From Octopus bimaculoides (lineage: Eukaryota), in NCBI RefSeq assembly GCF_001194135.2, contig NC_068984.1, positions 38,937,444 to 39,001,443 of the forward strand: 64,000 bases of DNA. The letters are read 5' to 3'. Below, in pieces: positions 492-64,000 of this stretch (within the stretch, counting starts at the first letter, position 1; each line of letters starts with the position of its first letter). The notes under the pieces are model-generated. The model saw only the letters and a program-made list of their open reading frames with translations. It did not search any database and was not told where the DNA came from. A program made the translations under genes and the position numbers.

Positions 492-1711
492 GGTTATAAA
501 TACTAAAATAATGGTAGTAGACAAATATAATTTTAATGTAACATTTATTACAACAGAAACATTTACCACTCAATATGGCTGCTCTTTTGGGCAATTACTG
601 CCTCCACACAAGAACAAAATTTTTTGCAGCTGCTGCAACCTCTGCCTTTTTGATTTTGCATGTCACACACATGGTGCAAGTCTTCAAACTGTTGACACTC
701 AAGTGTGGTGAAACATTGGTCCTTGCATGAAGTACACCCCATAAAAAGTAATCGAGAAAGTTGAGATCTGTGCTATTTCTGGGCCAGATGTTGGCCCTCA
801 CAAAAAATGGCATCTCACCAAGGAAAGCCTGTGTTGCTTTTGACCCATGGTATGGTACAGAATCCTGGATAAGTACCATATTGTCAAGCCCAAACTTGTG
901 CTCCATCCAAGGTAACAGAGAGTTCTTCAGGATGTCCAGATACTCCTTTATGCCAATCTTAAAGCCAGACTCAATGAAGTGCTGGTCCATGATACTTCCA
1001 TCACTTGCCACAGCTCCACATACCATTACTAAGACAGGATTCTTAGTCTCAAACACAGTGGGGGTGGTGTCAGAAGGGTTGTATGCGATCACTCAAGAAT
1101 TTCTGTGATTCACCTCAGCATCTACAGTGAACTTTTTCTCATCCACAAACATGAGAGTTTTTTATGCACCTTGATGCTTGATGAATGACAGAAGCTTTCA
1201 GCATCTCTCAGCTCTGATTGCTTTGGCCTTGGCTGTTACGAGGTGACAGCATCATCGAACATACCTAGTCATGCTAAGGTTCCTATTCACAGCTCTAGAC
1301 ACTATGGGAAAGAACACATTGCATTTCTTTTCAAGATGTGTTGGCTTCAATTGAGCATTTGAGGCCAGCAAGAAACTTTGGATTGTGTTTGGAATCACTT
1401 TGAGTCTTGTGTTCTTTTCTATCAATCTTTTCCTCTTCTTTAAATTGTTTATACACATGATAAACTGTTGCTTTTGGAAGTTTCACTAACATAGCAATTT
1501 TATTGGCAATGTGCCTGGCACACACCAAAACAACAATGGTAGAATGATTCTGTTGTTCCATGACTTTCTGTTGTCGAATCAGTATGCCTTTTACCTGAAA
1601 AATAAAGAGAAGGATTAGATTTTCAAACAAGTAGGGTTTTGTCAAAAAATGAAACATTAAATTCACTAAGTCACTGCTAAAAATTGGTCTCAATTTATCT
1701 ACAAGACCCTG
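486..1711 (-). mobile_element. Degenerate IS630-Tc1-mariner transposon, maT/mori (DD37D)-like
   Basis: ORF 1331-1693 has an HTH-like N-terminus (KLPKATVYHVYKQF). ORF 595-1092 has VMVCGAVASDG, QDSVPYH and WPRNSTDLNFLDYFLWG, with D rather than E as third catalytic residue and 36 aa spacing here. Ends (c/t)AGGGT...ACCCTG are flanked by TA. Frameshifted. Confidence 0.85.
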
Positions 1712-3061: not shown

Positions 3062-3124
3062 GGGGGGGGGGGCACAAACACAGATGCACAAACATATACA
3101 CATATATATATATATATATATATA

Positions 3125-3285
3125 TGTGATGAGCTTTCAGTTTCTGTCTACCAAAACTACTCACAAGGCTTCGGTCGGCCTGAGGTTATAGTAGAAGATA
3201 CTTGCCCAAGATGCCACGCAGTGGGACTGAACCTGGAACCATGTGGTTGGGAAGTAAACTTCATACCACACAGCCATGCCTGCTC
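3125..3285 (-). mobile_element. tRNA-derived SINE, family B (head ...ggctgtgtggtaag...ggttcagtcccactgcgtggcaccttgggcaagtgtcttctactatagcc)
   Basis: Same motif recurs at about 14125-14275(-), 15050-15480(+), 15720-16080(-), 16860-17175(+), 19860-20000(+), 20640-20730(-), 36640-36750(-), 42420-42560(+), 50225-50445(+) and 55610-55750(+). Confidence 0.8.
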
Positions 3286-3329
3286 TTATTTTAACTTTTT
3301 GAATTCGAATATGAGTTGGATATTATGTT

Positions 3330-6002: not shown

Positions 6003-7086
6003 ATAATAATCATACATGTGAATTACAAAATTGGGAATAATAAATTTCAAGATATTCAAGTTATAGTATAGATTTTCTAAAACCTTAAATTGTATTTTTA
6101 AAAATGTAAAGTACATCAATGCATTGCAGCACACCATATAAGAACCAATGGTTTAAAATATCTGATATTATCCGTCTACATAAACTATTTTGTGTTTATT
6201 TACTTTCAAGTGTTGTAATCTGTGGAAGAAAGTTGTGGGTTAAGTTGATAGAGCACTGCATTATCTCAAAGAGTTAATGACTTGCATTTTGCTCATGGTT
6301 TCATAGTGTTTTTATGGCCCTGACACTTAAGCCCTGATTGCTTGTCCGAACTAGATCTAAATAAGGTAAGAGATCTGCTGAAAGCTCAGTAAAATTTGGC
6401 AGCTAGCAAATTTTTGCTCATTTGCTGCTCTGTATTCAACTCGCCTTGTAGATACCTATAACCAAAGCATTCCATTCATGACCATCTCATCTTATTTTCA
6501 AGCAATTATATCCAATGATGTCTGTTCTTTATTTAATGATATGATAATAAAGAGTTCAAATTATGCAATAGTATCAGCTCTAGAGTAAAATTTTCATCTA
6601 TAATACATACTCAATGTACATATATTTTTGAAAAGTTTGACACTGCAGTGGTCATCTTGAGAAAAGATCCCTTTATAGACACAGTATGTTTAACACACTA
6701 CATCCATAAAAGGATCCTTTCTGAGATGACAACTCCAGCTTCTGACTTTTCAACAATATACCTACATTGAGTGTGTCATATAGATAAAGATTATAATACA
6801 AAATATTTTGAGATGAAATTGGTTCCTCTTTTTAGCAGGCTGAACAACTATGTAGATGGTCTTTCATTTGAACAATAAGGCTTGTTCATCTGGGGATGTG
6901 CTCTATGAAGCTGATTTTTCACTGTATGAAGATGAAACATTTTTTAGTGATATTTTTACACTTCAATGGATTACATGACACATTGATCTACTTATGAAAT
7001 AAATCTATTTATTCATAGCTAATTAAGTTTACATTGTAAATGATACATATTGCCATTTATTTAACACACACTTTGATATTATCCAT

Positions 7087-7240
7087 TGGCGTTAGGAAGG
7101 GCATCCAGCTGTAGAAACTCTGCCAAATTAGACTGGAGCCTGGTGTTGCCATCCGGTTTCACCAGTCCTCAGTCAAATCGTCCAACCCATGCTAGCATGG
7201 AAAGCGGACGTTAAACGATGATGATGATGATGATGATGAT
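7087..7240 (+). mobile_element. Young tail-only RTE-type retroposon with (GAT)n tail
   Basis: One mismatch versus the reverse complement of 40896-41046; CpGs intact. Confidence 0.85.
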
Positions 7241-7449
7241 CTTACATATCTGATTCTGTAAGCAATGATTTATTTATTATTTTCTAAGGACAGAAATATC
7301 AATGTCCTCTGAACTATTCAGAGATGAAATTATATCAGTATGCAGTGATCTTCAAATTTACAATGATCATCCACATTTTGTACTGTAATGAAACAATGTA
7401 ATAGAAAATCATGTGAAGTTTAATTTGATTTCTTTCTATTTTCGTTCAA

Positions 7450-9050
7450 CTAACACAGAATTATCAATAAATTTATTTCAAATTTGTATGCAAAAGTAAA
7501 ATTACTAAGATCAAGAGAAACAAAAACACCGAAAAACGTGTGGTGCTACTACTCTGTATTTCCACTGGTACCATCTGTTGGTTAATGATCTTGTTAGGAC
7601 AGAATGGTGATATCATGACTGACTTGATGTCAAAAAGGTACAAAGTGTAACATATGTCACTTGAGTACCTAGAAGTGGAAAATACTTTAAAATAGGTCAC
7701 AGACGAGATTTTTTTTATTTGCATGTATTCCACTGAAGATAAAATTTCCTGTTTACTATCATATCAAATAATTCCTGTTCCAATTTCAAGCATATTGATA
7801 CAACTGATTTTGAATATCAATACATCAATCCTGGCTTTCATGAAGAAGTCTTTTTTTTTTTTTAGAACTGAGTAAATGGCATCAAAGATGAACTCAGTAG
7901 ATGAGTCTGATTACAACTCTATACCATGCAGAAGAAAAAGAAAATAATTTTGGACTATTTTTCAATGGTGTCATAATCTCAGTGTCACCATAGCCAGTTG
8001 CAGAGCCTGAGTCTGATTTATCAGGAGCCAATAACAAGTATGAATAGAAATTCAACTAGATTAAATTAGTCATAAACATCCACCAGGTGGTATGCCTGTG
8101 TGAAATCATAAAGCATGAGACATCTGTTAAAGTGAAATATCTGAAGATATTCCTGCCAGTCACAAAGAAAGTATTTCAGAAATAGGATTGTGAAGTTTCA
8201 GAAGTTGACTGTGAAATGACAATATTGGAGTTCTTAAGGCATGAAAATTATCCCCACTGGCTGTCTACCATATACACAAATGAATGAACCAAATATTAAA
8301 AAGTTGTTAAAAATCACATCCAGAATTATGTTAATCAAAGATGCTTGAAAATTTCTTCAAGAAAAGAAACTGAAAAGGCATCTGAAGTTCAATGGGTGTG
8401 CATGGTAAGCAATTAAGTAGTGCAAATAAACAACTTTGTGACAAAATTTGTGGACCAATGATGCCAAATCACATTTGTGACAAACAACTGGCCATCCAAC
8501 TGTAATAAGCCATTTACTCCATATAATACAATTAATTTTGAACTTCAATACATTAATCCTGTCCTTCACAATGAATCCTTAAGAGCTATTATCGAAAGTG
8601 ATCTATACTGATTTTTACAGCAAATCTCTTCTATTTAAGCTATCTCCTTCAAATACAATGATTTAGCTGAGAAAATACAGAAAGGCGACCCAGGTTTTAA
8701 AGCTGAAAGTTATAGTCAGTCATAGTAAAGAAGGAAATTTGATTAGGAAGTGGTGAAATAATTGAATCTAGTGCAGCAGGGCATGAATAGGCATTTTTCA
8801 GAGGCACAGAGCAGTCTATGCAGTTCAATAATGGTCAGTAAAACATAAATCAGTGGAGACACCAAAAACACAGGAAGATACATTGGTATGTGTGCAAAGG
8901 TGGATTGCCTGAAGGAAGAGCTTGGTGTTGAGCATCTTATGTTGAAATCAGTATATGCAACACATAACTTAGCAGCTGAAGTAAAGGAGATCTTCAACTC
9001 AGTTGCAAAAATTCAAAATATTGTAAAATGCTTGTAGAATTGCTATTTTT
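7450..9050 (+). pseudogene. Highly degenerate hAT-like transposase remnant
   Basis: Fragments FEYQYINPGFHEE (about 7810), FELQYINPVLHNE (about 8545) and SGDTKNTGRYIGMCAK...LKSVYATHNLAA resemble the hAT TDGxxxNTG...CxxHxxxLA motif; many stops. Confidence 0.45.
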
Positions 9051-13640: not shown

Positions 13641-15049
13641 CTTTTATCTGTAAGGTTTAGGTTGAGACTTTATGAGACAGTATCAATCTTTTAATCTTTT
13701 ATTTGTTTCACTCATCAGACTGGCCATGCTGTGGCACCTCCTTGAAGAATTTTAGTACTTATTTTTATTTTAAGCCTGGTAATTTATTCTATCCACTAGC
13801 TCAGGAGTGAAATTTGCTTAGGGGTGCAATCCCAGATCCAAATTTTTTTTTTACAAATAAGGAGTTGTTCTATTTATTTATTTTTTTCTTTGAGAAAAAA
13901 CCTAATTTTAAGCTACTTTTTACACGTTGTTTCCTAAACATGAAAAAAAGTAAGTAGGGTTACAAATTTTGATTTTGTACCCACCAAAAATTTTAGGAGG
14001 TGCACTTGCACCCCTTGCACCTGGGCCCATGATTCTAACTGAACCACTAGTTGTCAAGTATGGTAGTGGGGGACAAACACAAAGACACACATAGATACAC
14101 ACACACACACACTTATATAACAGGCTTCTGTCAGTTTCTATCTACCCCACTCACAAAGCTTCAGTTGGCTTGAAGTTACAGAAGAAGATTCTGGCCCAAA
14201 GTGCCAGGCAGTGGGACTGAACCCAGAACCATGTGGTTAGGAAGCAAGCTTCTTACCACACAGCCATTCCTGCACTTATGTGTGCTGCAGACATGTACAT
14301 GAATGTGTATATGCATGTGCATGTCTTTGTATTGAAACAACTTGTGCAGTGGTGAGTTTATGTTCTACATAAACCATAAAGTCCAGCAGTTCAGTGGTCC
14401 AACAAGCAAAGACATGGGATAAAGTATATTACTAGAAAAACAAATAAGGACTGTTGTTAGGAAGGGCATATGGCCATAGAATACTGCCTTAAGAAGTTTC
14501 ATGCAACTCATAGTGGCATAATAAAAAGCTAGCATAATAGTGATGATTCTACAAAATGACAAGAAAAGAGAGTTTGGTTAGGAGAAGGAACATGAAAATT
14601 AAAAGTGAAAATAGAAACAATATGTGAAAGTGTTCGAAACTTCCTATTGAAAATTTATCCATGATGGAGTAGGGAAAGAGAGAGGTGAGGAAGTAATGAG
14701 TGAGATTCAGACATCTGAGGATGCACTGTGAACAAAGGGAAGGGAAGGATTGGAAAGGAAAGACAGAAAAATCAGTACTTCAAACGATGTATGAAAAAAT
14801 AATAAAAAAGAAAACAAACAAATAGAATGGTGGTGGGGATGAAGAGTAAGTAGGAGTAAGAGACAGTAACCACACCTAAAAATACCACACATAGCAACAA
14901 CTCTTTCAATTTATATAGAATATTCTAGATCTTGAATGAATAATTGAAAAAATATTTGGGACACATTTGCATGCCTTCCTTTACAGGCCCACACATTTTC
15001 AGATACATACACAAATATGTAGAAGTAGGAGTCAATATATACATGGCAT

Positions 15050-15144
15050 AGACACCTTGGGCAAGTGTCTTCTACTATAGCCTCTGGCCGATCAAAGCTT
15101 TGTGAGTGGATTTGGTAAACGGAAACTGAAAGAAGCCTGTCGTA

Positions 15145-15223
<79 letters not shown>

Positions 15224-15480
15224 TTGTCCTCCTAGCATTGCTTGACAACCGATGCTGGTGTGTTTATGTCCCCGTCACTTAGCGGTTCGGCAAAAAGAGA
15301 ATAAGTACTAGGCTTACAAAGAATAAGTCCTGGGATCGATTTGCTATTGCACAGAAAAGATTCCTTTTAAGATTGCGTGATAGGATTGATATCCAGACAA
15401 CATCTATTTTGTTTAGGAGTGACCATACTGCATGGCTGCAGTCAAATGACTGAAACAAGTAAAAGAGTAAAAGAGTATAT
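15050..15480 (+). mobile_element. SINE family B copy with internal (TA)n and a 90-bp foreign insert (15340-15429)
   Basis: SINE body flanks an insert identical to 16673-16762. Confidence 0.85.
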
Positions 15481-16379
15481 ATATATATATATATATGATG
15501 GACTCACCCATTGAGGATGACATATGAGCACTCTGCTTTTGCAGAATGACCTGCACAAATGATCTGTTTATAGTGATCAAATCGATGTTGTCTGAACAGG
15601 TGCACTGTGAACTATGTATCAGGTGTTAAAATGACTGCAGAGCAACATGAGATGAAGTGTTTTGTTCAAAAACACAATGCACCACCCGGTCTAGGAACTG
15701 AAATCATGATCTAGCGACACAATATCTTATCCTTTATTTGTTTCAGTCATTTAGACTGAGGCCATGCTGGGGCACCACCTTGAAGAACTTTAATTGAATG
15801 CATTCACCCTATTAATTATTTTTTAAGCCTGATAGTTATTCCATCAGTCTCTTTTGTCGAACTGCTAAGTTATGGGGATGTATACACATCAAAACCAGTT
15901 GTCAAGATGTAGTGGGGAACAAACACACACATGGCTTCTTTCACTTTCCATCTATCAAATCCACTCACAAGGCTTTGGTCAGCTTAAGGCTATAGTAGAA
16001 AACACTTGCCCAAGGTGCCATGCAGTAGGGCTGAACCTGGAACCATGTGGCTGAGAAGCAAACTTCTTACCACACAGCTTAACAAAAAGTATACACATGC
16101 ATAATTATCAGAATATCATGTAGGAGTACATGTGAAATAAGCATGGGAGGGAAGAATTGTAAGAAGTTGAGGCTTATATTCATTCTCTGTAGAGCTGAAG
16201 TTTCCTGGTCTTAGATGAGATGCTTATTTTGTGCTGGTAGGAATAAGTTCAGCTATCATCATCATCAGGTTGAGCTTGCTCAAACATTTTTAATTTACAC
16301 ACACCTTCTATCTCAGTCTTGCATTAGTTGAGTGAGATCTTCAGAGAGACATTCAGTGTCTCTGGTGAGTTGATCTACA

Positions 16380-27799: not shown

Positions 27800-29040
27800 C
27801 TTGGACAAGTATGTAACATCACTTAAACAACTAAAAGCCAGAAAACAACAACTTTGGCCAGGTAAGAACAGCACATTTTAAAATAGTACTGAAAGATAGA
27901 CAGATTGTAGGTAAAAAGGAAGGAAGCAAAGGGTTTGTCAGAATAGTATGTCCATATTAACACACACTGAAAGAGCAAATTTCTTGTTGCTGAGGTTTAC
28001 CAATGTTCTGTGGCGAAAGGTTCTTGCAAAGCAGTGTCAGGGCAAATAAAGACATTGGAAGATAGAAAGGTGTACAGAATGACGGTAGTGCATTTACCAT
28101 CACTGATGCAGAATTAAAGCTGTTTGGAAACGTTATTACAAGAAGTTGCTGAATGAGGAGTAGGTAAAAAGGTTTGTGTGTGTTGGCACTCCGTCGCTTA
28201 CGACGCCGAGCGTTCCAGTTGATCCGATCAACGGAACAGCCTGCTCGTGAAATTAACGTGCAAGTGGTTGAGCACTCCACAGACACGTGTACCCTTAACG
28301 TAGTTCTCGGGGATATTCAGCGTGACACAGTGTGACAAGGCTGATCCTTTGAATTACAGGCACAACAGGAGGTAAGAGTGAGAGAAAGTTGTGGTGGAAG
28401 AGTACAGCAGGGTTCGCCACCATCCCCTGCCGGAGCCTCGTGGAGCTTTAGGTGTTTTCGCTCAATAAACAGTCACAACGCCCGGTCTGGGAATCGAAAC
28501 CGCAATCCTATGACCGCGAGTCCGCTGCCCTAACCACTGGGCCATTGCACCTCCACAGGTAAAAAGGTCTACTCCAAGTAGATCCAACAGAGAGACCGGC
28601 AGTTACAGTTCATAAACACAACCAAGGATTAGAAGGCAGGGAAAGCAGCTGAAATGCCAAAGAGAGTCATTGAGATGCTGAAAATATTCAGTGCACTTGT
28701 TACATAGGTAGGTGCCATACCCAATGACTGGCATAGTAAGTATTAACGACAACTGCTTTAAAAACAAAGGAGATGCTCTAAAAAGCAACTGCAGAGGCAT
28801 CAAACTGACAGGCCAAGTTACGAAAGAATTATACAACTGATTAGGATATATATTACTGGAGATGAGATGCAGTTGAGTTTGTAGTGGTTTGTATCACTGG
28901 CGCCCTCTTCCTAGTGAGGCAACTACAGAAGTTCTTCGTTAAAAGTCACTGTTATCTTGCATTCAGTGATCTAGAGAAGGCCTTGGTAGTCTGATTGTTG
29001 CAGAAAAAAAAAACTGTTTGGCTGGATGGGTTGTAACAGC
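27800..29040 (+). mobile_element. Degenerate RTE LINE fragment interrupted by a SINE
   Basis: agaatgacggtagtgcatttaccatcactgatgcagaattaaag...ttattacaagaagttgctgaatgagg corresponds to an RNDxGxxxITDAExKxAWxxYYxKLLNEE-type RTE linker. Confidence 0.6.
28174..28556 (-). mobile_element. Young full-length tRNA-derived SINE with 12-bp TSD
   Basis: A-box TGGCCCAGTGG, B-box GGTTTCGATTCCC and (AC)n tail; TSD AGGTAAAAAGGT at 28162-28173 and 28557-28568; CpGs intact. Confidence 0.92.
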
Positions 29041-36757: not shown

Positions 36758-38520
36758 ATCATTATCAGCATTTAATGTCTGTTGTCCATACTGGCATGGG
36801 TTGGACAGCTTGACTAGGGCTAGCAAGCTAGAAGGCTGCATCAGACTCCAGTCTGATTTGACATGGTTTCTATGGCTGGATGCCCTCCCTAATGTCAACC
36901 ACTCTGAGAGTGTAATGGTTACTTTTATGTGACACTGGCATGGGTGCCATTTGCATGACACTGGTATTTGCTATTACTGCAATTTTACTTGGCTTGATGA
37001 GTCTTCTTCTCAAGCATGACATATTGCCAAAGGTCTTGGTCATTCGTCATTGCCTCTGTAAGGTTCAACACTTGAAAGGAGCTTCTCACATGCCACTGGC
37101 ATTGGCCACTTTGCCTCTGTGAAACCCAACACTCGAAAGGTGTTTTGTATGTGCCACCGGCATAGGTATCAGTTACATAACACCAACATCAGCCACGACT
37201 ACAATTTCACTTGACTTGACAGGTCTTCTCAAGCACAGCATATCACCAAAAGTCTCAGTCACTAGTCATTGCCTCTGTCAGGTCCAAAGTTTGAAGATCA
37301 TGCTTCACCACTTCGTCCCATGTCTTCCTTGGTCTACCTCTACCACAGCTTCCCTACACAGTTAGAGATCAGTACTTCTTTACACAGCTGCCCTCATCAC
37401 ATGGCCATACCAGCATAGTCATCTCTCTTGCACATCACATCTGATACCTATTACACCCAACTTTTCTCTCAAGATGCTTACACTCTGTCAAACATGCACA
37501 CTGACATTGCACATCCAGCGAAGTATACTGGCTTCATTTCTTTCAAGCCTACGCTTGTCCTCGGCTGTCACAGCCCATGTTTTACTGCCATGTAGCATAG
37601 CTGTTTGCACATAGGCATCATACATTCTGCCTTTCACACTGAGGGAAAGGCTCTTTGTTGCCAGCAGAGGTAGGAACTCACTGAATTTTGTCTAGCCTAT
37701 TCTTATTCTCACAGATATGCTCTCGGAGCATCCACCTTCACTACTATCTTGGTCACCTAGATAATAGAAGCTATCGACTACCTCAAGCTTACCCCACTGG
37801 CAGTTGATGGAGTCTATTTTCTGTACATTTTTGGTGTTTATTGTACCTTATGGAGTTTCTACATATGCCTTTTCTACAGATTGAGCTGGTCCATCTACCT
37901 GAAGGGATCCGTGATTTGTCTACCTTCCTACTTACTGAGACTGGTTTTTGCTAGGTTAACTCTAAGGTCCTTCAATTCTAGACCTTGCTTCCATACCAGA
38001 AACTACATCTCTAGTTCTGGTAGTGATTCCACTATAAGAACAAGGTCATCAGCATAGAGGAGTTCCCAAGGGCAGGCTTTCTTAAATTCCTCTGTTATTG
38101 CCTGGAGGACTATGATGAACAAGAGGAGGCTGAGGACCAATCCTTGGTGAACCCCTACATGTACCCTGAATTCTTCACTGTACTCGTTGCTAATCATCAT
38201 GTTACTGATAGCTTCCCTGTACATGGCTTTTACAGTTCTCACCATTTATCCCTAGTTTCTGCATTGACTGCCAGATAAGGGATTGGGGCACCCAGTAAAA
38301 TGCTTTCTCCAAGTCAACAAAAGCCAAGTACAGAGGTTTATCTTTGGCGTAGTATTTTTGCTGCCTTACCAGAAATATAGAATCAGTGATGCTTCTCCCT
38401 GGCACAAAACCAAACTGCATCTCATCTAGACTAACTTTCTCCCTAATTAGTTCAACCATGACCCTCTCTGTAACTTTCATCACCTGATCCAACAATTTGA
38501 TACCTTTGTAGCTATTTGAT
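36758..38520 (-). mobile_element. 5'-truncated RTE LINE (RT domain to 3' tail)
   Basis: YKGIKLLDQVMKVTERV, MQFGFVPGRSITDSIF, LYLAFVDLEKAF, VGVHQG, WELLYADDLVL; 3' UTR and tail shared with other copies; frameshifted. Confidence 0.92.
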
Positions 38521-39599
38521 ACCTTTGTAGTAATGGTAAACTTTGAATTACATGCTTCAATAACTGAATATGTAAACAATGCCAAGTGGCAATAGTGAAA
38601 GCATTCTTGGTCATTCGTCATTGCCTCTGTAAGGTTCAACACTTGAAAGGAGCTTCTCACATGCCACTGGCATTGGCCACTTTGCCTCTGTGAAACCCAA
38701 CACTCGAAAGGTGTTTTGTATGTGCCACCGGCATAGGTATCAGTTACATAACACCAACATCAGCCACGACTACAATTTCACTTGGCTTGACAGGTCTTCT
38801 CAAGCACAGCATATCACCAAAAGTCTCAGTCACTAGTCATTGCCTCTGTCAGGTCCAAAGTTTGAAGAAAGAGATTAAAGTGAAAACTTATGAAGTATTT
38901 CTCTTCCAAAGTTTTCTGAAACTGGAGCCAATCCGTGACCCTCATAACTCAAACCCATATTAACTTTTGTTTATTTCAGTTCAAATGTTCATATATGAGT
39001 GAAGACATTTTTATTTTTCAAAATGCAAAGAAAGATAAAAGAAGGATAAACTGAATGAGATTAGGGCATGTTTGCCATAAATATAATCCTTTCTACTCTA
39101 GGCACAAAGCCTGAAATTTTAGTGGGAGGGGATTAGTCAATTACATCGATTCCTGGTACTTATTTATTCTATTAACCCTGAAAGGGTGAAGGGCAAAGGG
39201 CAAAGTTGACCTTAGAGGCATTTGAACTCAGAATGAAAGGACCTAAGAAATGCTGCTTTGCATTTTGTCCAGTGCTCTAACAATTTGCCAACTTGCTACC
39301 ATATTTTTTGCCACAAATATTATATAACAAGCTTTTATGAAGCCATGTGATATGGTATAATATTGACTCATAACTCATTTTATATAGTGATATTTAAATA
39401 AAATTTAAACAACTTTTGCATGTCTTATCAGTACTTCCTTATAATTAGAGTAGCTTTGAGACAAAAGTTCCATAACAGATTTATCTGTAGCAGAAGTGAT
39501 TTACACTGTCATTATGTATGAGATGTTTTCATTTTGACTCATCTAGGCTTGAATACCAGAATGTCGGCTCCACAAGCCTTTTTATTTCAGCAGCTTCCA

Positions 39600-41046: not shown

Positions 41047-41419
41047 TATATATATATATATATATATATAACAAATGAAAGACAGAAGATGGAATATACG
41101 AGACTATATTATTAACCACAACAATTGTTTCGACACATCTATTATCGACTCCTTTTGTGGGACACAAAAACTGGTTCAGGAGTATCCGGTGGTGCAGACG
41201 TATCTCATCGGGTGATAAATAAATAAAAAAAACTCGTTAAAATGACTGTTCCATAATGCAACTTTCCGTCCTGTAGAGAGAAAAACAGCCAGATGGAGGA
41301 AAATTCTTCATATATGTAGAAGATCCAAAAATAAAATTCCAGAAGACAAAAAGAGAAACGAACACTTAATCCAGCGAGAAAAGTATTGAAAATAACCATT
41401 AATAGATGTTAATTTAAGG

Positions 41420-41693
41420 CAGTGGTTCCCAAACTTTTTCGGGTTGCCACCCACTTGACGCCCAGGTTACATTCCTAGTGCCCCACCCCAAGTAACTATC
41501 ACAAACGTACACTGCTTTTTGAAGTAAATTCAAAGCAACTGTATTTCACAAATAAAACTTAACCTCACAAATCCATTATTTTGTTGTTTTTACATGAATT
41601 GCTACCCCATTATTGCCCCACTTTTCTTCAATTCCCCCTTGAAACTTTCCATTGGCCCCAGAGGGACAATACTGCCCACTTTGAGAACCACTG
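41420..41693. mobile_element. hAT MITE with perfect 8-bp TSD
   Basis: TIR CAGTGGTTCCCAAA / TTGAGAACCACTG; TSD ATTTAAGG at 41412-41419 and 41694-41701. Confidence 0.92.
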
Positions 41694-42953
41694 ATTTAAG
41701 GGTTAATATGTAAAAAGCACCATTCTGGTGGCATGTAAAAAACACTATTTGAGTATGATCGTTGCCAGTGCTACCTGACTGGCTCTCGTGCTGGTGACAC
41801 GTAAAAAGCACCATTTGAGCATGGTCAATGCTAGTACCAGCTGACTGGCCCTCATGCCGGTGACACATAAAAAGCACCCACTACACTCTCAGAGTGGTTG
41901 GTTGGGAAGGCCATCCAGCTGTAGAAACTTTGCCAGATCGAATTGGAGCCTGGAACAGCCTTCTGGCTTGCCAGCCCTCAGTCAAACTGTCTAACCCATG
42001 CCAACATGGAAAGTGGACATTAAACGACAATGATGATGATGATGAATGATGTAACTTTAAATACCTTGCAATGTTGCAGCTTCTACGATAATTATTAACT
42101 GGTATTTGAATGTTAAATGTGTAAAATAAGATGATCTTAGTGTTATCACATTAGAATTAAAAGTGAAACTATTATATCACATTACAATATAGATGTTGTT
42201 GTTTCACTTTTGACACATAATACTGGACTAGTGTAAGAGATAAGAGATTGCTCTGGGCCCACATTAGGCAAGAAGTTGAAAGTTTTTTTTAGCCCATAAC
42301 ACTCCAGGGACCCTATCTAATGCATGCGTAAAATTTGAATGAAATTGGCCGGGTAGTTCTTGAGTGTGTGTGTGAGAGAGAGAGAGAGAATGCATATGCG
42401 TGTGTGTATGTGTGTTATAGTTGCAGGCATGGCAATGTGGTTGAAAAGCTTACTTCTCAACCATGTGGTTTCAGATTCAGAACTAATGTGTTGCACCCTT
42501 TAGCCCTAAGTATACTTTAGCCCCAAGTATACCAAAATCTTTGAGTGTATTTGGTAGTACTTTGTGTACACCACTTTTTAACATAGATACATTGTTTCCC
42601 CCAACACATTGTTAGAGGTGACTGAAAGGGCTGGCATCAGGCATGACACCAGGTCATAAGACACTGCCACTAAATGTTCTATCCACGTCATGCCAGCATT
42701 GAAAACCCAAACATAAAAATGATTATGATGACAATGATGATGATGATGATGATAATAATGAGGAGGAGGATGTTGTACAAGCACTCAGCTCTGAGTGCAC
42801 TACTTCTTATAGTAGAAACAACTATAAGCTAATGAAAGTAATGAAAGATTACATCACTCCTATTCTTTTGTCATTCATTAATTGATATTATGCTCTATTC
42901 TTTCCTAATGCATTCTAAAGCATAAGTATATTGAGTTCTATGTCTTAGTGAAA

Positions 42954-47236: not shown

Positions 47237-48840
47237 AGGGTCCCTCGATCCTTTATCTGGTGGGTGATGCAGAAACTGGAAATTGATGAATGGTTAATAA
47301 GGGCTGTACAGGCCCTATACAGAAATGCTATTAGTAAGATTAGGGTTGGCAATGAGTATAGTGAAGAATTCCAGGTAGAAGTAGGGATCCACCAAAGATC
47401 AGCTCTCAGCCCCCTCTTATTCATCATAGTCCTCCAGGCAATAACAGAAGAATTCAAGACAGGTTGCCCTGGGAGCTTCTCTATGCTGATGACCTGGCCC
47501 TCATAGCAGAATCACTACCAGAACTAGAGAAGAAATTTCAGGTGTGGAAGCAAGGTTTAAAGTCGAAGGGCCTTAGAGTTAATGTTGCAAAGACCAAAGT
47601 TCTAGTAAGTAGGAAGGTGAACACATCACACACTCCTTAAAGTAGGTGGCCCTGCTCGATCTGTAGAAAAGGTGTAGGTAGAAACTCCATAAGATAGGTG
47701 CAGCAACATCAAAACAAGATTAATGGAAGATAGCTTTCGTGTGCAGCAGATGCACAGGGGCAATAAACACCACAGACGCTCAGAAAATTGATTCCATCAC
47801 ATGCTAGGGGGAAAAACTAAAAGTAGTTGATAGCTTCCACTACCTAGGTGACTAAGTCTGTAGTGGGGGTGGATGCTCTGAGAGCATTGCCACTAGAATA
47901 AGAATTGCCTGGGCAAAGTTCAGACAGCTTCTACCCCTGCTGGTGACAAAGGGCCTCTCACTCAGAATGGAAGGTAGATTGTACGATGCATGTGTGCAAA
48001 CTACCATGCTTCATGGCAGTGGAACATGGGCAGTGACTGCTAAAGACATGCATAGGCTCGAAAGAAATGAAGCTAGCATGATCCGCTGAATGTGTAATGT
48101 CAGTGTGCACACACAACAGAGTGTAAGTGCTCTGAGAGAAATGTTGGACATAAGTAGCATTGGATGTGGCGTGTAAGAGAGACGTTTGCGTTGGTATGAT
48201 CATGTACTACGGATGGATGAGGAGAGCTGTGTGAAGTGCCACTCCCAAACAGTGGAAGGAATCCAGGGTAGAAGGAGACCCAGGAAGACATGGGATGCGG
48301 TGGTCAAGCATGACCTTCAAACGTTGGGCCTCTGTGAGGCAATGGCAAACGACCAAGACCTCTGGAGATATGCTGTGACTGCAAAGACCCGACAAATAAA
48401 GTGAGTTCACGCCTGTATCCTACACTAGTGTTGCATAACCAGCCCACTCAAAATGTACCTTTGGATTGGAGGATGATATGCTGTGCTTGAGGAGACCTAG
48501 TGACTCAAGTACACCAAATCACAATCAAATGGAAATTGTAGTTGCGGTCCCTGTACCAGTGGCATGCAAAAAGCACCATCCGAATGTGGCCGATGCCAGC
48601 CTCGCCCCTGTGCCAGTGGCATGTAAAACGCACCATCCGATTGTGGTCGATGCCAGTCCCCTCTGGCCCGTAGAAAGCACCCACTACATTCTCGGAGTGG
48701 TTGGCATCCAGCTGTAAAAGCACTGCCAGATCAGACTGGAGCCTGGTGCAGCCTCCTGGCTTCTCAGACTCCAGTCGAACTGTCCAACCCATGCCAGCAT
48801 GGAAAACAGATGTTAAACGATGATGATGATGATGATGATA
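47237..48840 (+). mobile_element. 5'-truncated RTE LINE (RT C-half, 3' UTR, (GAT)n tail)
   Basis: DRVPRS..., VGIHQRSALSPLLFIIVLQ, YADD-encoding ctatgctgatgac, LRWYDHVLRM, GRRRPRKTW; tail ends at about 48838. Confidence 0.92.
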
Positions 48841-50445
48841 CTTTATATCAACATACAGAATCAAATTTGAGGAAAACTTCAGGGAATATAGTTATATACG
48901 CAAGGCTGCACTCTTTATTTTCTTTAAGAAAAACTTCTTTTATTCCAGAAAATGTGATATAATAGATGTTTTACAAAGAATTATAGTTGCATATAAACGA
49001 GACAGCAATCTAATTTATCAGCCCTACATCACATTGAAATTAACAGCTCATGATTATTGTTTTTCCAATTAGTTTTCTTCACTCAAAGTGAACCAATTTT
49101 CACATTCATAACTAGTATAACATTTTATATATACACTTTCTTCCAAACCAACTTAAAAAAAAGCTATAGGTCACCAGCTGCTGAAAAATAGAAATATTTG
49201 CTGGCAGAAAATAAGCAGGTCTTGCATACTATATTGAGATCTTGGGGGTAGCCAGTGAAGATCTATTTGATAAAACATATGCATATATATATTTAGGGAA
49301 CTATTTTGTGTCTTTCTTGTTCACCTGTCTTTTGTACATTTTAAATCTTCTTTGTTACTGTGACCTGACCCCAGTTCCAATAATAACCTCAATATTTAAA
49401 TGTGATGTGATCTAAGCATAATGGTCTTCCAGAAAGCAGAACTTAATGTGATTTACAATGTTTTCAAATAAAGTATAGCAATATCATCTCTTTTATGAAT
49501 ACAGTATAGCTCAGTCTTCATAACTAGTTGAAAGCTTTTGAAATTTTCTGTTATATCTTTTGCAAAAAGGTTTGATCTGACAATCAAAAGTCAGAATTAG
49601 TGTTACATTATGATAGAGTAATTTTGACATTTTAGTATATACATATATACATGTACTATTGCATTCACTTTTAGTATTCTTTTTATCAATAGTATATAGT
49701 ATTAATTATTATTCATCAAAAAACAGTACATTTAATGACTGACACTCCACTGTACTATTAAATATTTGATAAAAGGAGTGAAATGAAGCTGACTCATGAA
49801 TAATTACAAAAATGATACTTTATAGTTTACATAGTAATCTATATACATTTTGAGCTGACTAGAATTAAAATAATAAAAAAATAAACTAGAATTTTATAAG
49901 GTTGCAATATAGAAAAATTATTAAAAGGAAACTAAACAAAATTAAAAATTTAATATAAAATTGAAAGTTCATAATGAATAAGTTTAAGGCAGTATACACA
50001 ATAACAAGGATATTTTATAGCAAAAATATATTAGTTATCATGTAGTAACTATTAAAATGTTGGTGCTAAAGTATGTTGTTGCTGAAGTAAGCTAAGCTGA
50101 TAGTCACTAACCAAATATTTGTTAACATATTTTTAGTTTAACTTTGGTAAAATAGTTTCTTCTGTAACACTGCATTGCCTTTGTTATACTATATAAAAAT
50201 ATTAATTTAAAATCTATGACATGACTGTATAGTTAAGAAGCTTGTTTTCCAACAATGTGGTTTTGGGTTCAGTCTCTGTGTAGCACTTTAAGCATGCATT
50301 TTCTTCTATTAATCCAGACTGACCGAAGCCTTGTGAATGAATTTGTTACACAGAAACTGAAGGAAGTCTGTCTTCTAAGTGTGTGTGTGTGCATGTTTTC
50401 CCCTTGTCTTGACATCACATGATCGTTGTAAGCAAGTATCACCAC

Positions 50446-57200: not shown

Positions 57201-58536
57201 TATATATATTGCCAGGTGGATGACATAATTGGAGAGCATTGGACAAAATATCTTGCGATATTTGGTTATCACGTTTATTTATGCCATTTATCCAGGTAAA
57301 TGCCGTTTTTCAGGAGTGCTGAGACTGGTGAGATGATGGGAGGAATTTATCCTCAAACTAAAGACTTGGCCTGAATGCTTACAACCAGGGTGAACTTCAC
57401 TGAAAGCGGACAATGACCAGCTGGTGGTGTTAAACTGAGTAATGAATCAAGTCAACTATTCAAGAACTCAAAACAAAATGAACTGGAATAAATAGCACCG
57501 ATCCACCAACCTAAATTGGTACTTTGGTTTTATTGACTTTAAAAAGATGAAAGCAAAAATGACAATGGTGTAATTTGAGCAGAGAGAGAGCCACAGTAAA
57601 TTCCACTATGGCATTTTAAACTATGTTCTAATATTTCTGTCAATTTGCTACCAATGTCCCAAAGTTTGATTATTGCTCAAGTCCATTTTGTCTTTCACTC
57701 TTCAGGGTTAGAAAAATAAATACTAAGGGTAGGGTTTGATGTAATTACTATCACTTAGAAAATGGTGTTCCAGCATGGCCACAGTTGGATGAACAAAACC
57801 AATCGAATACTTTTACCCTATAATCCTATTTTAATCATCATTAGGATCATGATATGCTTAAGAATATAGACAGAGAATATACAGTGGCAAGGAACAAGTA
57901 TAATTGGAACAAAGATTTATTTGTTACATCAGTATGATACCTGCACCATACTTGGGTATATTCCAAAAGCTTCATTCTACAACAAGGCTATCCATTTTAG
58001 ACATAAATATACTTTAGTGTAGTAAAACAAAATAAGCTATGCATGATTGGAGAAATTGCAACTGACACTAGTTTAGTGCCATGGCTACACAGACGTAAAA
58101 ACATAATACAATATTGGACAAAACTTTCAGGACATCCCCTAGTATCATTAATGCTGCAAGGCACTGTTTGAAAGAACAACATTATCAGAAGGTTCCAAAA
58201 TCATTATGGTCTCCAGTTTACAACTGACTTAATTTCTTTTAGTGCCATGTTCCGCTGGACTGGCTCCCATGCAGGTGGCACATAAAAAACACCTCTTTGA
58301 GCGTGGCCGTTGCCAGTACCGTGTGACTGGCCCTCGTGCCGGTGGCACATAAAAGCACCCACTACACTCTTGGAGTAATTGGCGTTAGGAAGGGCATCCA
58401 GCTGTAGAAACTCTGCCAGATCAGATTGGAGCCTGGCTTGCCAGTCCTCAGTCAAATCATCCAACCCATGCTATCATGGAAAGCGGATGTTAAATGACGA
58501 TGATGATGATAATTATAAAATGAAAGTAAGTAATAC

Positions 58537-58610
58537 CTTTTCAGACATTCCAAACTTTTTTACCATAGCTTCTGCAATAGCTGTGGCTTGCTGAAAATCT
58601 GACCCGGCAC
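58537..58610 (-). CDS. YME1L1: YME1L1 coding exon (GAGSDFQQATAIAEAMVKKFGMSEK)
   Basis: Acceptor aattttcag, donor AAG|GTATTA; phase 1 in and 0 out, consistent with neighbours; M41 protease GAxSD and FGMSEK motifs. Confidence 0.95.
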
Positions 58611-59022
58611 CTGAAAATTGATGGAAATGTCAGTTCATGAAATGGCATCATGTAATTAACATGTAATTCACTGAATATAAATCATCATAAAGTATTTTTG
58701 AGGATAAATTGTAAAAATACTTTTGATAGAGTGATTATCAAGAAGGACTATCCTAAATTAGTGAGAAGTGAAACATTGTAATAGAATTAACAGAAATGCT
58801 TTAGTGTCAAAGGTAACAAAATTTGACAGGCCAATTATATCAAACAAACATGATTAGAGTGAAAAGCTGATGAAAATCATGTTAAAGAATAAGAGTTACT
58901 ACTTAATAATTTAGGAATACAGAATAGCTTATGTAAATCATAACTTACAAACTATGAAACATAAGTACAATACAAATGAAAAAAATGTAAATGTTTTTGC
59001 AGTTCAATAAATAAATTTTTAA

Positions 59023-62000
59023 GAGTCGTTACACAACTCAGGGTATGGAAGTTTTACCCAGTTTTGTAGAGGTCTAAACTACCAAAACTCAGTAAAATCG
59101 TGCTATAGCTGCAGTATTATATACTTTGTGTTGCATATTTATGAAATTCTCGAAAATGTCAATTTTTCGAAAAGCTACAATGTAAATCTCTAAGGTATTT
59201 CATCTGTTTTCTTATACTTAACCTTTAAAGAAGATATTTTGCTCTTTATCTTTGCCTCAGTTGGATTTGTGGATATATCATCGTGTGGAGGATGTCTTTG
59301 TTGGAACAATTCCCATGCCCTGCGTGGTATAATATTAGGATCTTCCTGAAATATTTCCAGCATTGTTGACTTGAATGGCTCATGAATTCCATGGCTAGCA
59401 TTATACAATGTTGATTGTCCTTTTGTTTTGTTTGCCATCATGGATGAAATAACAGTTCAAATTTCTGTTTTCGATGGTTAATCCAAATGCCCAGGATGTT
59501 TACGTTTAAGTTCCACTAACATTTTACCTGGACCTCATTTCATAGCTTTGTTTTCAATACCCAAATTAAACATATCAATAATTTCTTGTTTAAATGGATC
59601 CACATACTTTTGACCATACTTATTACCATGCTTTCTTGTTCTTGCCCATCTGGTTTCAAATCCACAACACTCATTATTATTATGCTGGATTGCTTCATGA
59701 ATGGGATCAAACATCTTAAGTTCTTCAACATTTGAACTAATATTAATCACCTCAAATTGATGCTGTACATGTATATCTTTAGCATAAACAATAGCATGAC
59801 TGATTAAATCTTGTTGTCCTACGGCTCCCTTGCAATTATGAATTTCCATTTTGTAGGCAGTTGCAAATTCCCTATGACATAAATTACATTGAAGAGGATT
59901 TTCATCGTCTGATTCCATATCTAAATCATTAATATTTGATGCTACAGCAAGTCCAATACAATGCTTCTCTGGGATATTCCCCTCAACACCATAAACAATA
60001 CATTCTGTTAAGCTGCCTCTACCTTTCTCTATAAGACCAATATCTTCAACAGTGTCTGTATCAAATATTTCATTTTCATTGGAAGCACAATCCTCATCGA
60101 ATTTGCTTTCACAATTTCCTTCATTTACGTCATTCGTAGTGCCAATGATAAGGTTGTATGTTGCTGTCAATGGTAAGTTCGAATTTTCATAAAGTGAAGT
60201 GGGATTTCTTGTCAAATCAAACTGTACTTCCATATGATCACCTATGTTTTGTAATTTTCCAATTATCTTAGTTTTCCTGTTCAAACTGTTCAACAGCAGG
60301 CCTATTAATACCAACCAATGCTGTCACTGTATTACTTACACTGCCATTAGCATTTAAAGCATCAACTAATTCAACAGGAGTTATAACATCTGAACCCATA
60401 TTACAATGCATATACACATGCCTCATAGCTGTAGCAAAATGAGCGTCGATACTGCCTTTAACATCTTGTACACCAGTGTGTATAAAAGTACAAAGTTTAA
60501 GGTTGTATCTACCTGCAATTTTATATAATGTAAACAATAAGTTTCTCTTCTTATAACATCTTGCGTTGTCAGATTGTACATAAAGATTTCAAATGTATAG
60601 AAATTTGGTTGATATTTATCTACATACTCCATCAAAATAGGACATAACAGCCACATAGTCTTGCTTACTACCCCCAGTAGAAATGTGATCGAAATGATAT
60701 GATAATCCTTTAAATTTTCAGTATTACGCCGTTCTTCATTGATGTATCTTGTATACATCATGGTTCCATGCCACGATGACCCTTTCTTACCGTAAAAATC
60801 TGTAGTTTTTTCCCTATAGTATATAGCTTCGAATTTCATTTTGAAATCCATAACAACCATAGCATCTTCTAAACGTAAATTGAACATTATTTCATCAATC
60901 CTATTGCATTGATTAAGTACTCTCACATGATGACCAAATAAAAGATGCAATGTTTCCATAGCATCATTCAAAAGAATTATATGTTCTGGGCTCACATGCC
61001 ATTTAATGTATTGTATTACATACTTGGAGAAGCAACAAACACCACAGTGTTTCATTTCCGCTCCAGAGATGGATAAAGAAAACTCTTTATCAGTGACACT
61101 ACATGTAGAAATGTGTCCCTCATAGGTTGTCTTAATGTAAGCTTCTAAACCGTTAACAACAGCATTCAAAGATTCTGATTCGGCACTGGTAGCAACAACA
61201 GTCTTCAAACGTGCAAAATTATCATACAGTAATACTCTCATACATAATTGACTGCTTGTTTAATTGTTTGATCCTTGGTAGTTAACGTTTTGACTATCTT
61301 CTGGAATGATGTAGAGCCTAATTGTTTATTTGAGGTATGGTTTTTTTGTAATCACGTAGCATTATAGTTGTATTCTTTCCCTAATCAGCTTGGGGAAATG
61401 TATTTCTTCACCATTAATCGTAAATGTTTTGGTACTCCATGAGATTCGGCATACATTAGCATCCGACAAAACAAACTCCTCTGCAGCTTCCATTTGATCA
61501 TGATCGTATCGTATAATTGATCTATTGGAAGGTGTAAGCTGCTTTCCACTGGCATATGTTTATACTTTCGTCGTAATGAAGCTACTTTCTTCATACCAAT
61601 ACCAAAATGATCTTTCAAAACATTTGAAACTAAGGATACTGCTAATGGAGCTGTAACAGCATCAGCTTGTACATTTTTTGGCAATGCATCTTGTACTTTA
61701 ATGATATTTTCTGCTAATTTGCCTTCATTGATGACACCTTCTTCATTTTTAACAACCTCTTTCATAAGGCCTTCAGCATCATACAGACTAATGATAGAGC
61801 ATACTTTTTCATTATGGTACTAGTTAGTTTCACTAGTCGTTTTTTAGCTGCCTCGTCAAAGTCTTCCATTCGGGTACTTTCACGTTTAGCTTTTCCCGGT
61901 AATGATGATGATGATTTTAAACCAAATGCTTCATACAATGCCCCCACTGTTGAAACAATTCGTGACGGATCGCTAACTTCTGGTTCAGAATCCTTTTGTT

Positions 62001-62377
62001 CCGTATATACACTATGTTTTCTTGTATTCATATTTGTTTTATGTGTGCTGACATCTCCCATAAGTCGTATTCTCTTTGTGGCACATGTGTTTACATTTTC
62101 GTTGCGTTTATTATCTCCACGACATGTACATCCACATCTGTAACATCCTTGACAACTAATACATCTATCTTCTTTGCAAGTACATGATAATTCAGACATA
62201 ACTGCCGACTGGGTGAAGCAAAATCAAAATCAAAATCAAAATCTGGACTACCTGTGTGGGTTTTTTTTTATCTATTAATTTTAACCAATCAAATTGCCCT
62301 GTTTATTATTCAGTTTGTGATAATTCAGTATTTTAAAGTTCTACAAAAAGTTAATACTCTGACCCACGAAGCAACTC
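59023..62377 (-). mobile_element. Sola3-like DNA transposon (3355 bp) with a disrupted transposase of about 1000 codons, inside a YME1L1 intron
   Basis: TTAA at 59019-59022 and 62378-62381; termini GAG...CTC; short imperfect TIR (gagt-N11-tcagRgtat). Motifs VVMDFKMKFEAIYYREK..FYGKKGSSWHG, YVQSDNARCY and GVQDVKGSIDAHFA give a DDD triad. Confidence 0.8.
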
Positions 62378-62699
62378 TTAAGAAAATTTCAAAAACAAAT
62401 AAATGAATATTCTTGAGATATATCTCAACAAAAAACTTTAATCTGTTGTAACTTCTGTTAATAGAAATGACTGTTTCAAAACTGATTAGGATAGAAAGAG
62501 AATAAATGTACAAAGGAATTAGGATAATAAAAGTGAATATGAACAAGTATGAGTGACAGTACCAAGCCATGAAGTAATTATTGTCACAGCAAATAGAGTA
62601 AGGAATACAAGTATGCTTGAAAAAACCAGGTTGAACAAATTTAGTAATATTTATATACATATTATATAAATGTGTGTGTGTGTTATGCTGAAATGATTA

Positions 62700-63525
62700 C
62701 AATAGGAACTGGACCACAAACTTAGAAGAGAACAAGCAGGTTTTCGAAAAGGAAGATCATGCAATATTCACATTAAGGAAACATCATTGAGCAATCACTA
62801 GAACATAGAACCCCAGGAGCAATAAATTATGTTGACTTAAAAAAGAAAAAAAAAACCTTTGACAGCATACACTGCTAGTCACTTTGGAAGATCCTTCAGA
62901 TCTATGGTGTCCCTGATTGCTATATCAAAATCTGTAAGTCACTTTATGAAAACTCAAGTTGTTGTATAAAAGCAGAATTGGAATTTACTGAGTTTTTTTC
63001 AATTCTATCAGGAGTGTAACAAAGATGCATCCTGTCCCCATTCTTTTTCTTGATAATCTTGGACTACATTCTATGGTCCTTGGATACATGTAGATATGGC
63101 TGAAAATGGGGAAGAAGGAAACTGGCAGATTTAGACTTTGCTGATGACTTAGCCCTTCTTGCCAACAACTGCACAGAAACACACACTATGACAAATGCTC
63201 TAGATGAAACAGCTGGAAAATCCACTTGAGGGTAAATATATCAAAAACAAAAATACAGAAAGTTGCCTGCAGTGAAATACATGAAGTCTTAATCAATGGG
63301 GAAAAGATAGAAGAGGTTCAACGCTTCACATATCTTTGTAGCATTCAGGCAGCAGATGGCAATGCTGAAACTGACACAAAACAAAGGACAACCAAAGGCG
63401 CAGGAGTATCAAACAAGCTCCAATTGCTATGTCAATCAAAGAGGCTCATGTCACAAACCAAATTAAGGTTATTCTGGTCAATTGTTGTCTCAACATGTAT
63501 GCTGCTGATACATGGATGAGTATCA
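62700..63525 (+). mobile_element. RTE LINE RT fragment in a YME1L1 intron (antisense)
   Basis: LDFADDLALL, LRVNISKTK and IEEVQRFTYLCS; frameshifted. Confidence 0.85.
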
Positions 63526-63641
63526 CTGGAATTATCAACACTTCATATACAAATGTCTCAAGCTAACAAATAAATTAGATGTGAATGAAATATATATGTC
63601 TAAAGCATAAATTGTGATGAAAGAACACCAAAAATGTTTAC

Positions 63642-63768
63642 CTGTTGTAATTTTCTCACCACCATAGATAACTTCTTCAGCAACACGACCTCCCATACAA
63701 ACATCAATTTCTGCTAACAACTGAGCTTTTGTTTTATTAAAGATTTCTTTCTCAGCAATATATGATGT
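63642..63768 (-). CDS. YME1L1: YME1L1 coding exon (TSYIAEKEIFNKTKAQLLAEIDVCMGGRVAEEVIYGGEKITTG); the gene continues beyond the window
   Basis: Acceptor tttataacag, donor G|GTAAAC; 127 nt; resembles human RAQLLAQMDVSMGGRVAEELIFGTDHITTG, distinguishing it from AFG3L2/SPG7. Confidence 0.95.
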
Positions 63769-64000
63769 CTGTTATAAAAAGAATAGAAATAGAAATTGTC
63801 TAGCATTCAGATTTAATATGTCTAATTTAGCAATTGAGTTAATGCACAGCACAAACATTTGATTACTATAAACAAATCATCTGTGTAGGTTGTTCAGTAA
63901 GGAATTGCAGAATTTTCATCTGTCATCTATGATAGAAAAATCCACCATACATTCCAAAACACAAATAAACAAAAATATTATTTTTTATAATTCAACTGCT

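Follow-up and report, generated by a model that had tools for sequence, protein, structure and literature searches.

A fossil TTAA-inserted DNA transposon, probably of the Sola3 group, in an intron of a YME1L1-like gene of Octopus bimaculoides

Introduction

The Sola superfamily of DNA transposons was reportedly described in 2009, and a 4-bp TTAA target duplication is said to have been given by Bao et al. in that year as the hallmark of its Sola3 group. TTAA duplication is also common to two other superfamilies, piggyBac and Kolobok. Kolobok elements have been documented with TTAA duplications, 5′-RR...YY-3′ ends and a C/DxxH motif between the second and third acidic residues (PMC9587614). Majorek et al. 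2014 give in their supplement (PMC3985635) the RNase H-like cores of Sola1-1_AP, Sola2-1_HM, Sola3-1_HM and C. remanei CRE_08425 (Sola3 group, E.13).

In cephalopods, the RepeatMasker-style tables of Marino et al. 2022 (Table S2) assign DNA/Sola-3 a share of 0.234% among the repeat copies of Nautilus and of 0.0018% among those of O. bimaculoides, and record none in O. vulgaris (PMC8967140). An ORF-based survey, which included two cephalopods, found Sola ORFs solely in bivalves among the analysed molluscs (PMC10294476). The initial annotation of the present locus had described its lineage as rare or unannotated in cephalopods; the second of these terms is not quite accurate, DNA/Sola-3 being already tabulated there at low frequency (PMC8967140).

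Here we report the analysis of a single element in O. bimaculoides. The window, that is the whole stretch of 64,000 nucleotides analysed, comes from a draft assembly, has 35% G+C and contains five runs of N. With its architecture, target duplication, homology and decay all observed, the feature is very probably the decayed relic of a Sola3-group element (Sola superfamily), an autonomous class II DNA transposon of the cut-and-paste type.

Element ends, inverted repeats and target site

The element spans 59023-62377 of the window (3355 bp); read from the sequence, GAG opens it at 59023 and CTC closes it at 62377. The following features were found at its ends.

59019..59022, no strand: left TTAA target-site duplication, read directly; TTAA stands at the same junction of the O. 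vulgaris copy L020, in an unrelated flank
59023..59046, minus strand: terminal inverted repeat at the element's 3′ end in gene orientation, GAGTCGTTACACAACTCAGGGTAT, with a 15/24 match to the other end
59062..59082, no strand: left arm of a subterminal inverted repeat (partner 62328-62348), 21 nt, 81% complementary
62219..62243, no strand: 5′ untranslated microsatellite (CAAAAT)4, from Tandem Repeats Finder; it exceeds its O. vulgaris counterpart by 12 bp
62328..62348, no strand: right arm of the subterminal inverted repeat, paired with 59062-59082
62354..62377, minus strand: terminal inverted repeat at the element's 5′ end in gene orientation, reverse complement GAGTTGCTTCGTGGGTCAGAGTAT
62378..62381, no strand: right TTAA target-site duplication, read directly; also present in L020

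The inverted repeats proved short and imperfect, as had been proposed: the outermost 24 nt match at 15 of 24 positions in the window copy, and the repeats are 31-37 bp long in the relatives described below. They are imperfect even in the better-preserved O. vulgaris copy (about 18/24), in which the counterpart of the window's left end reads AAGTCGTTACACGACTCAGAGTAT and that of the 5′-end repeat GAGTCACTTCGCGGGTCAGAGTAT. As a background, 16,647 pairs of TTAA lying 2-6 kb apart in the window were compared, and 57 of these reach 14/24 or better. The 15/24 match taken by itself is modest evidence.

The transposase pseudogene

Using the intact relatives P0001 and P0002 as tblastn queries, 62199-59205 was covered in alternating frames, and the joined protein of the window can be aligned over its full length to intact relatives, which measure 903-1061 aa. 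It was initially suggested that five minus-strand pieces join into one protein of about 1000 aa. The joined protein and its length hold, while the number of pieces has to be raised to at least seven. The coding features are given below.

59190..62199, minus strand: transposase pseudogene of ~1000 codons in at least seven frame segments, with 6 frameshifts and ~9 in-frame stops (tblastn of P0001 and P0002)
62122..62184, minus strand: N-terminal motif CTCKEDRCISCQGCYRCGCTC, rich in cysteine and putatively a zinc module that binds DNA; P0004, P0007, P0010 and P0012 have comparable Cys clusters
60834..60857, minus strand: first aspartate motif VVMDFKMK, putatively catalytic; its D is invariant in alignments A1 and A2, lies on β1 of the model and aligns with the first D of the Sola3 cores
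60553..60576, minus strand: second aspartate motif QSDNARCY, putatively catalytic; SDNA is invariant and lies at the end of β4 in the model
60436..60453, minus strand: third aspartate motif SIDAHF, putatively catalytic; D and H are invariant and lie at the start of the helix after β5 in the model
59826..59894, minus strand: C-terminal C2HC or C2H2-like zinc finger LQCNLCHREFATAYKMEIHNCKG, conserved in the alignment; zf-C2H2 matches in intact relatives are weak and below threshold

The DDD triad was thus located as claimed, and its three aspartates are invariant in the family alignments. In the alignment with the Sola3 references, QSDNARCY falls on KSDNASSY and RSDNAGCY. The reference cores end just before the point corresponding to SIDAHF, which would nonetheless provide the third aspartate. 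The three residues would be catalytic, and the cysteine-rich and zinc-finger modules may bind DNA. The frameshifts lie near 61809, 61553, 61392/61374, 61239, 60695 and 60269. With the frame broken by at least six frameshifts and about nine stops, the transposase cannot be made and the copy is inactive, as initially stated. An exact-sequence look-up of one window ORF returned no matching record.

The wider family

Twelve proteins matched the stitched protein at E values of 1e-216 to 1e-91, several of them uninterrupted and 903-1061 aa long. They align with the window protein over its whole length, and all 12 are unnamed and free of Pfam domains. In alignments A1 and A2, the invariant blocks MDFKMKFE, REKT-DFYGKKG-SWH, QSDNA-CY and HTG-QDGKG-ID-HF stand beside the three aspartates. 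When 1.84 billion cluster representatives were searched with a profile, 4766 relatives came out at E ≤0.001, 440 of which reach E ≤1e-30. The family is large and widespread.

Four relatives sit in GCA_014466275, GCA_047291915, SRR28961174 and SRR7244356. Intact relatives were found in three elements of similar size (about 3.3-3.5 kb; L005, L009 and L007), and a single end could be read in a fourth locus, L001.

L005: GCA_047291915.1, 984-aa ORF; TTAA followed by CAGTGGAACCACGAG...; the element measures 3419 bp, its 31-bp repeats are perfect and both flanks carry TTAA
L009: Tara metagenome; TTAA followed by CACCCGCGTCACC...; the repeats of 33 bp match perfectly and TTAA flanks either end
L007: Logan assembly of SRR7244356; TTAA followed by CACC..., inverted repeats matching at 31/35
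L001: transcriptome contig, with an MMETSP transcript in the cluster of its protein; TTAA followed by CAGTCGTTACACGAGTGAAGG stands at one end, which has the 11-mer AGTCGTTACAC

L005 appears fully intact, with its open frame uninterrupted, its repeats perfect and TTAA at both junctions. The ORFs of the intact relatives are intronless and 900-1060 aa long. The contigs of the intact relatives share the same design, so that insertion at TTAA and short inverted repeats can be regarded as traits of the family. The 11 nt adjoining TTAA at the left end of the window element are identical in the distant relative L001. The outermost triplets are GAG...CTC in the window, AAG...CTC in O. vulgaris and CAG...CTG or CAC...GTG in the relatives. 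GAG/CTC is evidently not constant in the family; the first base varies, being C in most relatives and G in the window. That this short-repeat, intronless (~1000 aa), strictly TTAA-targeting branch from marine protists and animals might constitute a large undescribed Sola3 lineage is a tentative and rather unlikely proposition.

Superfamily assignment

The family was compared with the cores of the Sola groups, each group being represented by one or two reference sequences and the scores being pairwise.

C. remanei CRE_08425 (Sola3 group): hhalign against the family, Prob 98.3%, E 2.5e-14; HMM of the intact relatives, 48.7 bits
Sola3-1_HM: hhalign, Prob 96.5%, E 9.9e-10; HMM, 28.8 bits
Sola2-1_HM: hhalign, E 0.014; HMM, 8.9 bits
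Sola1-1_AP: hhalign, no match; HMM, −4.4 bits

Both the profile and the HMM match the Sola3 cores far better than those of Sola2 and Sola1, in line with the initial assignment to Sola3, and the comparison supports placing the family with Sola3, as a divergent branch. TTAA was found on both sides of the window element, the O. vulgaris copy, L005, L009 and L007. The initial annotation had also stated that GAG/CTC ends characterise Sola3 and that most described animal elements of this group have long inverted repeats; neither statement was confirmed. In the Sola3-1_HM-like locus L010, the target duplication is ambiguous and inverted repeats of ~860 bp flank the ORFs. The sample of Hydra-type Sola3 consists of ten loci that represent one locus across many Tara samples, and its matches are short ORF fragments.

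An alternative is that the lineage is related to Sola as a group of its own, a sister of Sola3 rather than Sola3 proper. The core identity to the Sola3 references is only 21-22%, the ORFs of L010 come in short pieces between repeats of great length as opposed to the intronless ORF and 31-37 bp repeats here, and the family, with its 4766 representatives, is very large by itself. Against such a separation, phmmer with the C. remanei core alone retrieves dozens of family members at E values of 1e-9 to 1e-13 and one at 6e-28, the Sola3 match is at least seven orders of magnitude better than that to Sola2, and FYGKKG-S-H and SDNA--Y, which are Sola3-specific among the three reference cores, are shared by the family. 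A separate sister group is accordingly considered very improbable, and the placement within Sola3 is preferred.

Membership in one of the other TTAA-specific superfamilies is more improbable still. The TTAA duplication would suit both piggyBac and Kolobok, and the 5′-RR...YY-3′ termini of Kolobok (PMC9587614) would fit GAG...CTC. Pfam was searched at E values up to 1 with the window pieces and five intact relatives, and nothing above threshold was found; the piggyBac domain PF13843 (DDE_Tnp_1_7) was unmatched in both. Kolobok, judged by its published description, is excluded because the relatives start with C (CAG or CAC, not RR), the C/DxxH motif described between the second and third acidic residues (PMC9587614) is not conserved in the family, and there is homology to Sola3. 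This positive homology speaks against piggyBac as well.

For the fold, the intact relative P0002 was modelled with AlphaFold; the model is of medium quality (mean pLDDT 65) and better in the core. The predicted order of elements is RNase H-like, with D1 on β1, D2 just after β4 and D3 at the start of the helix after β5. A Foldseek comparison of this model with the PDB gave no significant match (best E about 0.1); the weak top matches are mostly RNase H-like nucleases, among them terminase nuclease domains, Mos1, Tn5, Hermes and the PIWI domain of Argonaute. Searching the PDB sequences with the family profile gave weak zinc-finger matches only.

Independent octopus copies and decay

The nearest relatives of the window protein, found with its N- and C-terminal pieces, are three predicted proteins of Octopus vulgaris (79-83% identity). 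A full-length paralogous copy was located in the O. vulgaris locus L020 (OX597816.1, 96.93 Mb), and its alignment with the window spans 59017 to 62384. Global alignment of the two copies gives 91.5% identity over 3314 bases, with 22 indels and a 2.9:1 excess of transitions. The flanks of L020 are unrelated to those of the window, and the likeness stops exactly at 59023 and 62377. The junctions of L020 read ...gttTTAA followed by AAGTCGTTACACGACTCAGAGTATGG at one end and CGCGAAGTGACTC followed by TTAAcaat... at the other. When other copies were examined for the same TTAA boundaries, as the initial annotation had advised, this paralogue was thus found to end at the identical bases with TTAA on both sides, and 59023 and 62377 are the complete boundaries of the element. 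A third copy, an internal fragment in L021, matches 60717-61976 of the window at 91.6%.

The idea that the ORF pieces belong to a larger or differently bounded repeat, with TTAA/GAG ends arising by chance in AT-rich DNA where TTAA is common (530 sites, 0.8% of positions in the window) and inverted matches of 14/24 do occur by chance, is effectively refuted by the end points of the O. vulgaris copy, by the terminal 11-mer kept in a distant relative beside its own TTAA and by the equal size of the intact relatives.

All six frameshifts of the window copy coincide with deletions that are private to it with respect to L020, and a different set of indels and stops marks the O. vulgaris copy. Both thus go back to an intact element, from which each has decayed on its own. 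The finding of no cephalopod Sola ORFs in the survey mentioned above (PMC10294476) fits the octopus copies here, all of which are broken, and for this reason ORF-based surveys miss such families. Separately, parts of the transposon are built into predicted octopus hexosaminidase proteins; these fusions would more probably be an annotation problem than real exonization.

Host gene context

The host exons were searched by tblastn with a human YME1L1 C-terminal sequence.

63640..63771, minus strand: exon of the host gene on the upstream side of the insertion, QTSYIAEKEIF...EKITTG of a YME1-like protease domain (tblastn E 3.9e-11), with an AG acceptor and a GTAAAC donor
58534..58623, minus strand: host exon downstream of the insertion, GAGSDFQQATAIAEAMVKKFGMSEK (tblastn E 4e-6), with the true acceptor near 58609
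53838-53710, minus strand: third YME1-like exon (tblastn E 1e-11), running into a stop codon

Canonical splice signals are present at each of the three exons, and the joined exons have yeast YME1 as their best PDB match (6az0, E 1.7e-21), with FtsH and AFG3L2 ranking behind it. The proposed location in a YME1L1 intron is thereby borne out. Between the first two exons is an intron of ~5 kb, two-thirds of which the element takes up; gene and element share one strand (sense orientation). None of the FtsH motifs Walker A, SRH and HExxH turned up in a motif scan of the window, because only the C-terminal exons lie there. Nothing in the sequence points to a function of the window copy besides filling this part of the intron. 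The window also carries a mariner-like remnant and a reverse-transcriptase remnant, and many SINE-like repeats are common to the window and the O. vulgaris loci. These repeats, along with the closest relatives being O. vulgaris sequences, give good support to an octopus origin of the window.

Proposed origin and significance

The history most compatible with a Sola3 origin would be as follows. The intact ancestor would have encoded a single intronless transposase of ~1000 aa, with a cysteine-rich N-terminus, an RNase H-like core containing the three aspartates, and then a zinc finger and a conserved domain. This transposase would bind the short inverted repeats at both ends, probably via the cysteine-rich N-terminus and the zinc finger. 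Its chemistry would be of the cut-and-paste type: the DDD site would cut, the element would be excised and then inserted at a TTAA, which becomes duplicated. The window copy presumably landed in sense at an intronic TTAA between two C-terminal exons of the octopus YME1L1-like gene. Neutral decay would have followed, with private small frame-shifting deletions, stops and base changes in the inverted repeats.

The window copy alone matters little, being one decayed intronic transposon and a piece of ordinary biology. Through it, the exact ends, the target site and the protein architecture are now given for an octopus Sola3 family. The wider family includes apparently intact TTAA-specific elements. 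If the intact copies are active and excise precisely, they would represent a second TTAA-specific system unrelated to piggyBac and a candidate tool.

Comparison with known systems

The closest likeness is to Sola3. It lies in a homologous RNase H-like DDD core with D-(F/Y/W)-x-x-K, FYGK(K/S)G-x-S-x-H and SDNA-x-x-Y, and in a cut-and-paste design in which inverted repeats bound the element and 4 bp are duplicated. The family differs in its intronless ORF of ~1000 aa and inverted repeats of 24-37 bp, whereas the ORFs of L010 are split and its repeats are ~860 bp long. The termini, moreover, are CAG, CAC or GAG and not one fixed triplet.

With piggyBac, the element has in common TTAA-specific insertion, a predicted DDD catalysis, short inverted repeats and a single long transposase with a Cys-rich module. 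It differs in that the octopus element has no PF13843 match, its termini are not CCC...GGG and its Cys-rich module is N-terminal. The likeness to Kolobok consists of the TTAA duplication and of the purine-purine start of the window copy, which fits 5′-RR. The relatives, in contrast, start with C and are without C/DxxH, and they are homologous to Sola3; it is by the description of Kolobok that the family is set apart from it.

Host gene and mobile-element remnants in the window

Three C-terminal exons of a gene for a YME1L1-like i-AAA protease were located on the minus strand, all with canonical splice sites.

Exons of the YME1L1-like gene
63771-63640, minus: C-terminal exon
58623-58534, minus: C-terminal exon
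53838-53710, minus: C-terminal exon, reaching the stop codon

A further short exon was expected within 58534-53838 and none was found there. The intron that holds the Sola3 copy also contains an ORF at 63226-63519 (plus strand), which has no Pfam match and by eye resembles a LINE tail.

The ORFs at 595-1092 and 1331-1693 (both minus) are the remnant of a Tc1/mariner-type transposase; the former has a weak, below-threshold Pfam match to DDE_3 (E 7e-4), while the latter, lying upstream of it, has no Pfam match and by eye looks like the N-terminal helix-turn-helix region of this transposase type. A reverse-transcriptase remnant was found at 38202-38660 (minus; RVT_1, E 8e-10). SINE-like repeats of 170-390 bp recur many times, at 67-88% identity, within L021, the O. 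vulgaris locus with an internal fragment of the Sola3 element.

SINE-like repeats (others are also present)
3068-3289
14050-14281
15053-15345
15733-16078
28357-28563
41050-41225

Two ORFs, at 41602-41877 and 48505-48864 (both minus), share a repeated peptide pattern (MVLFTCHQHE and MVRFTCHWHR, respectively), and no Pfam match was obtained for either of them. The pattern suggests another repeat family, dispersed or tandem.

Relatives of the Sola3 copy

The closest intact relative is carried by the transcriptome contig L001 (noted region 1-90). At the 3′ end of this element TTAA adjoins CAGTCGTTACAC, while the 5′ end is CAGATCTTTCCACGAG, preceded by CTTC and not by TTAA; the inverted repeats are perfect over the inner 23 nt only. 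In L004 (3736-5808), the copy encoding the relative P0010 is truncated at the C-terminal end. Among the ORFs that come after it, one has an NDC10_II domain (PF16787) and may represent an insertion of another mobile element.

Translated pieces of this Sola3-type transposon were also seen joined to glycosyl hydrolase domains in predicted octopus hexosaminidases; either the gene models are artefactual here or an intronic copy has been exonized.

Predicted hexosaminidases with transposon pieces
P0009: UniParc UPI00078A67FB
P0260: O. vulgaris beta-hexosaminidase subunit beta-like

The locus L010 from the Tara metagenomes, which resembles the Hydra reference Sola3-1_HM, has inverted repeats of ~860 bp on either side (1457-2301 and 6645-7470) that are 84% identical. 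It was found again in ten samples at >99% identity and therefore represents one host locus, not many copies.
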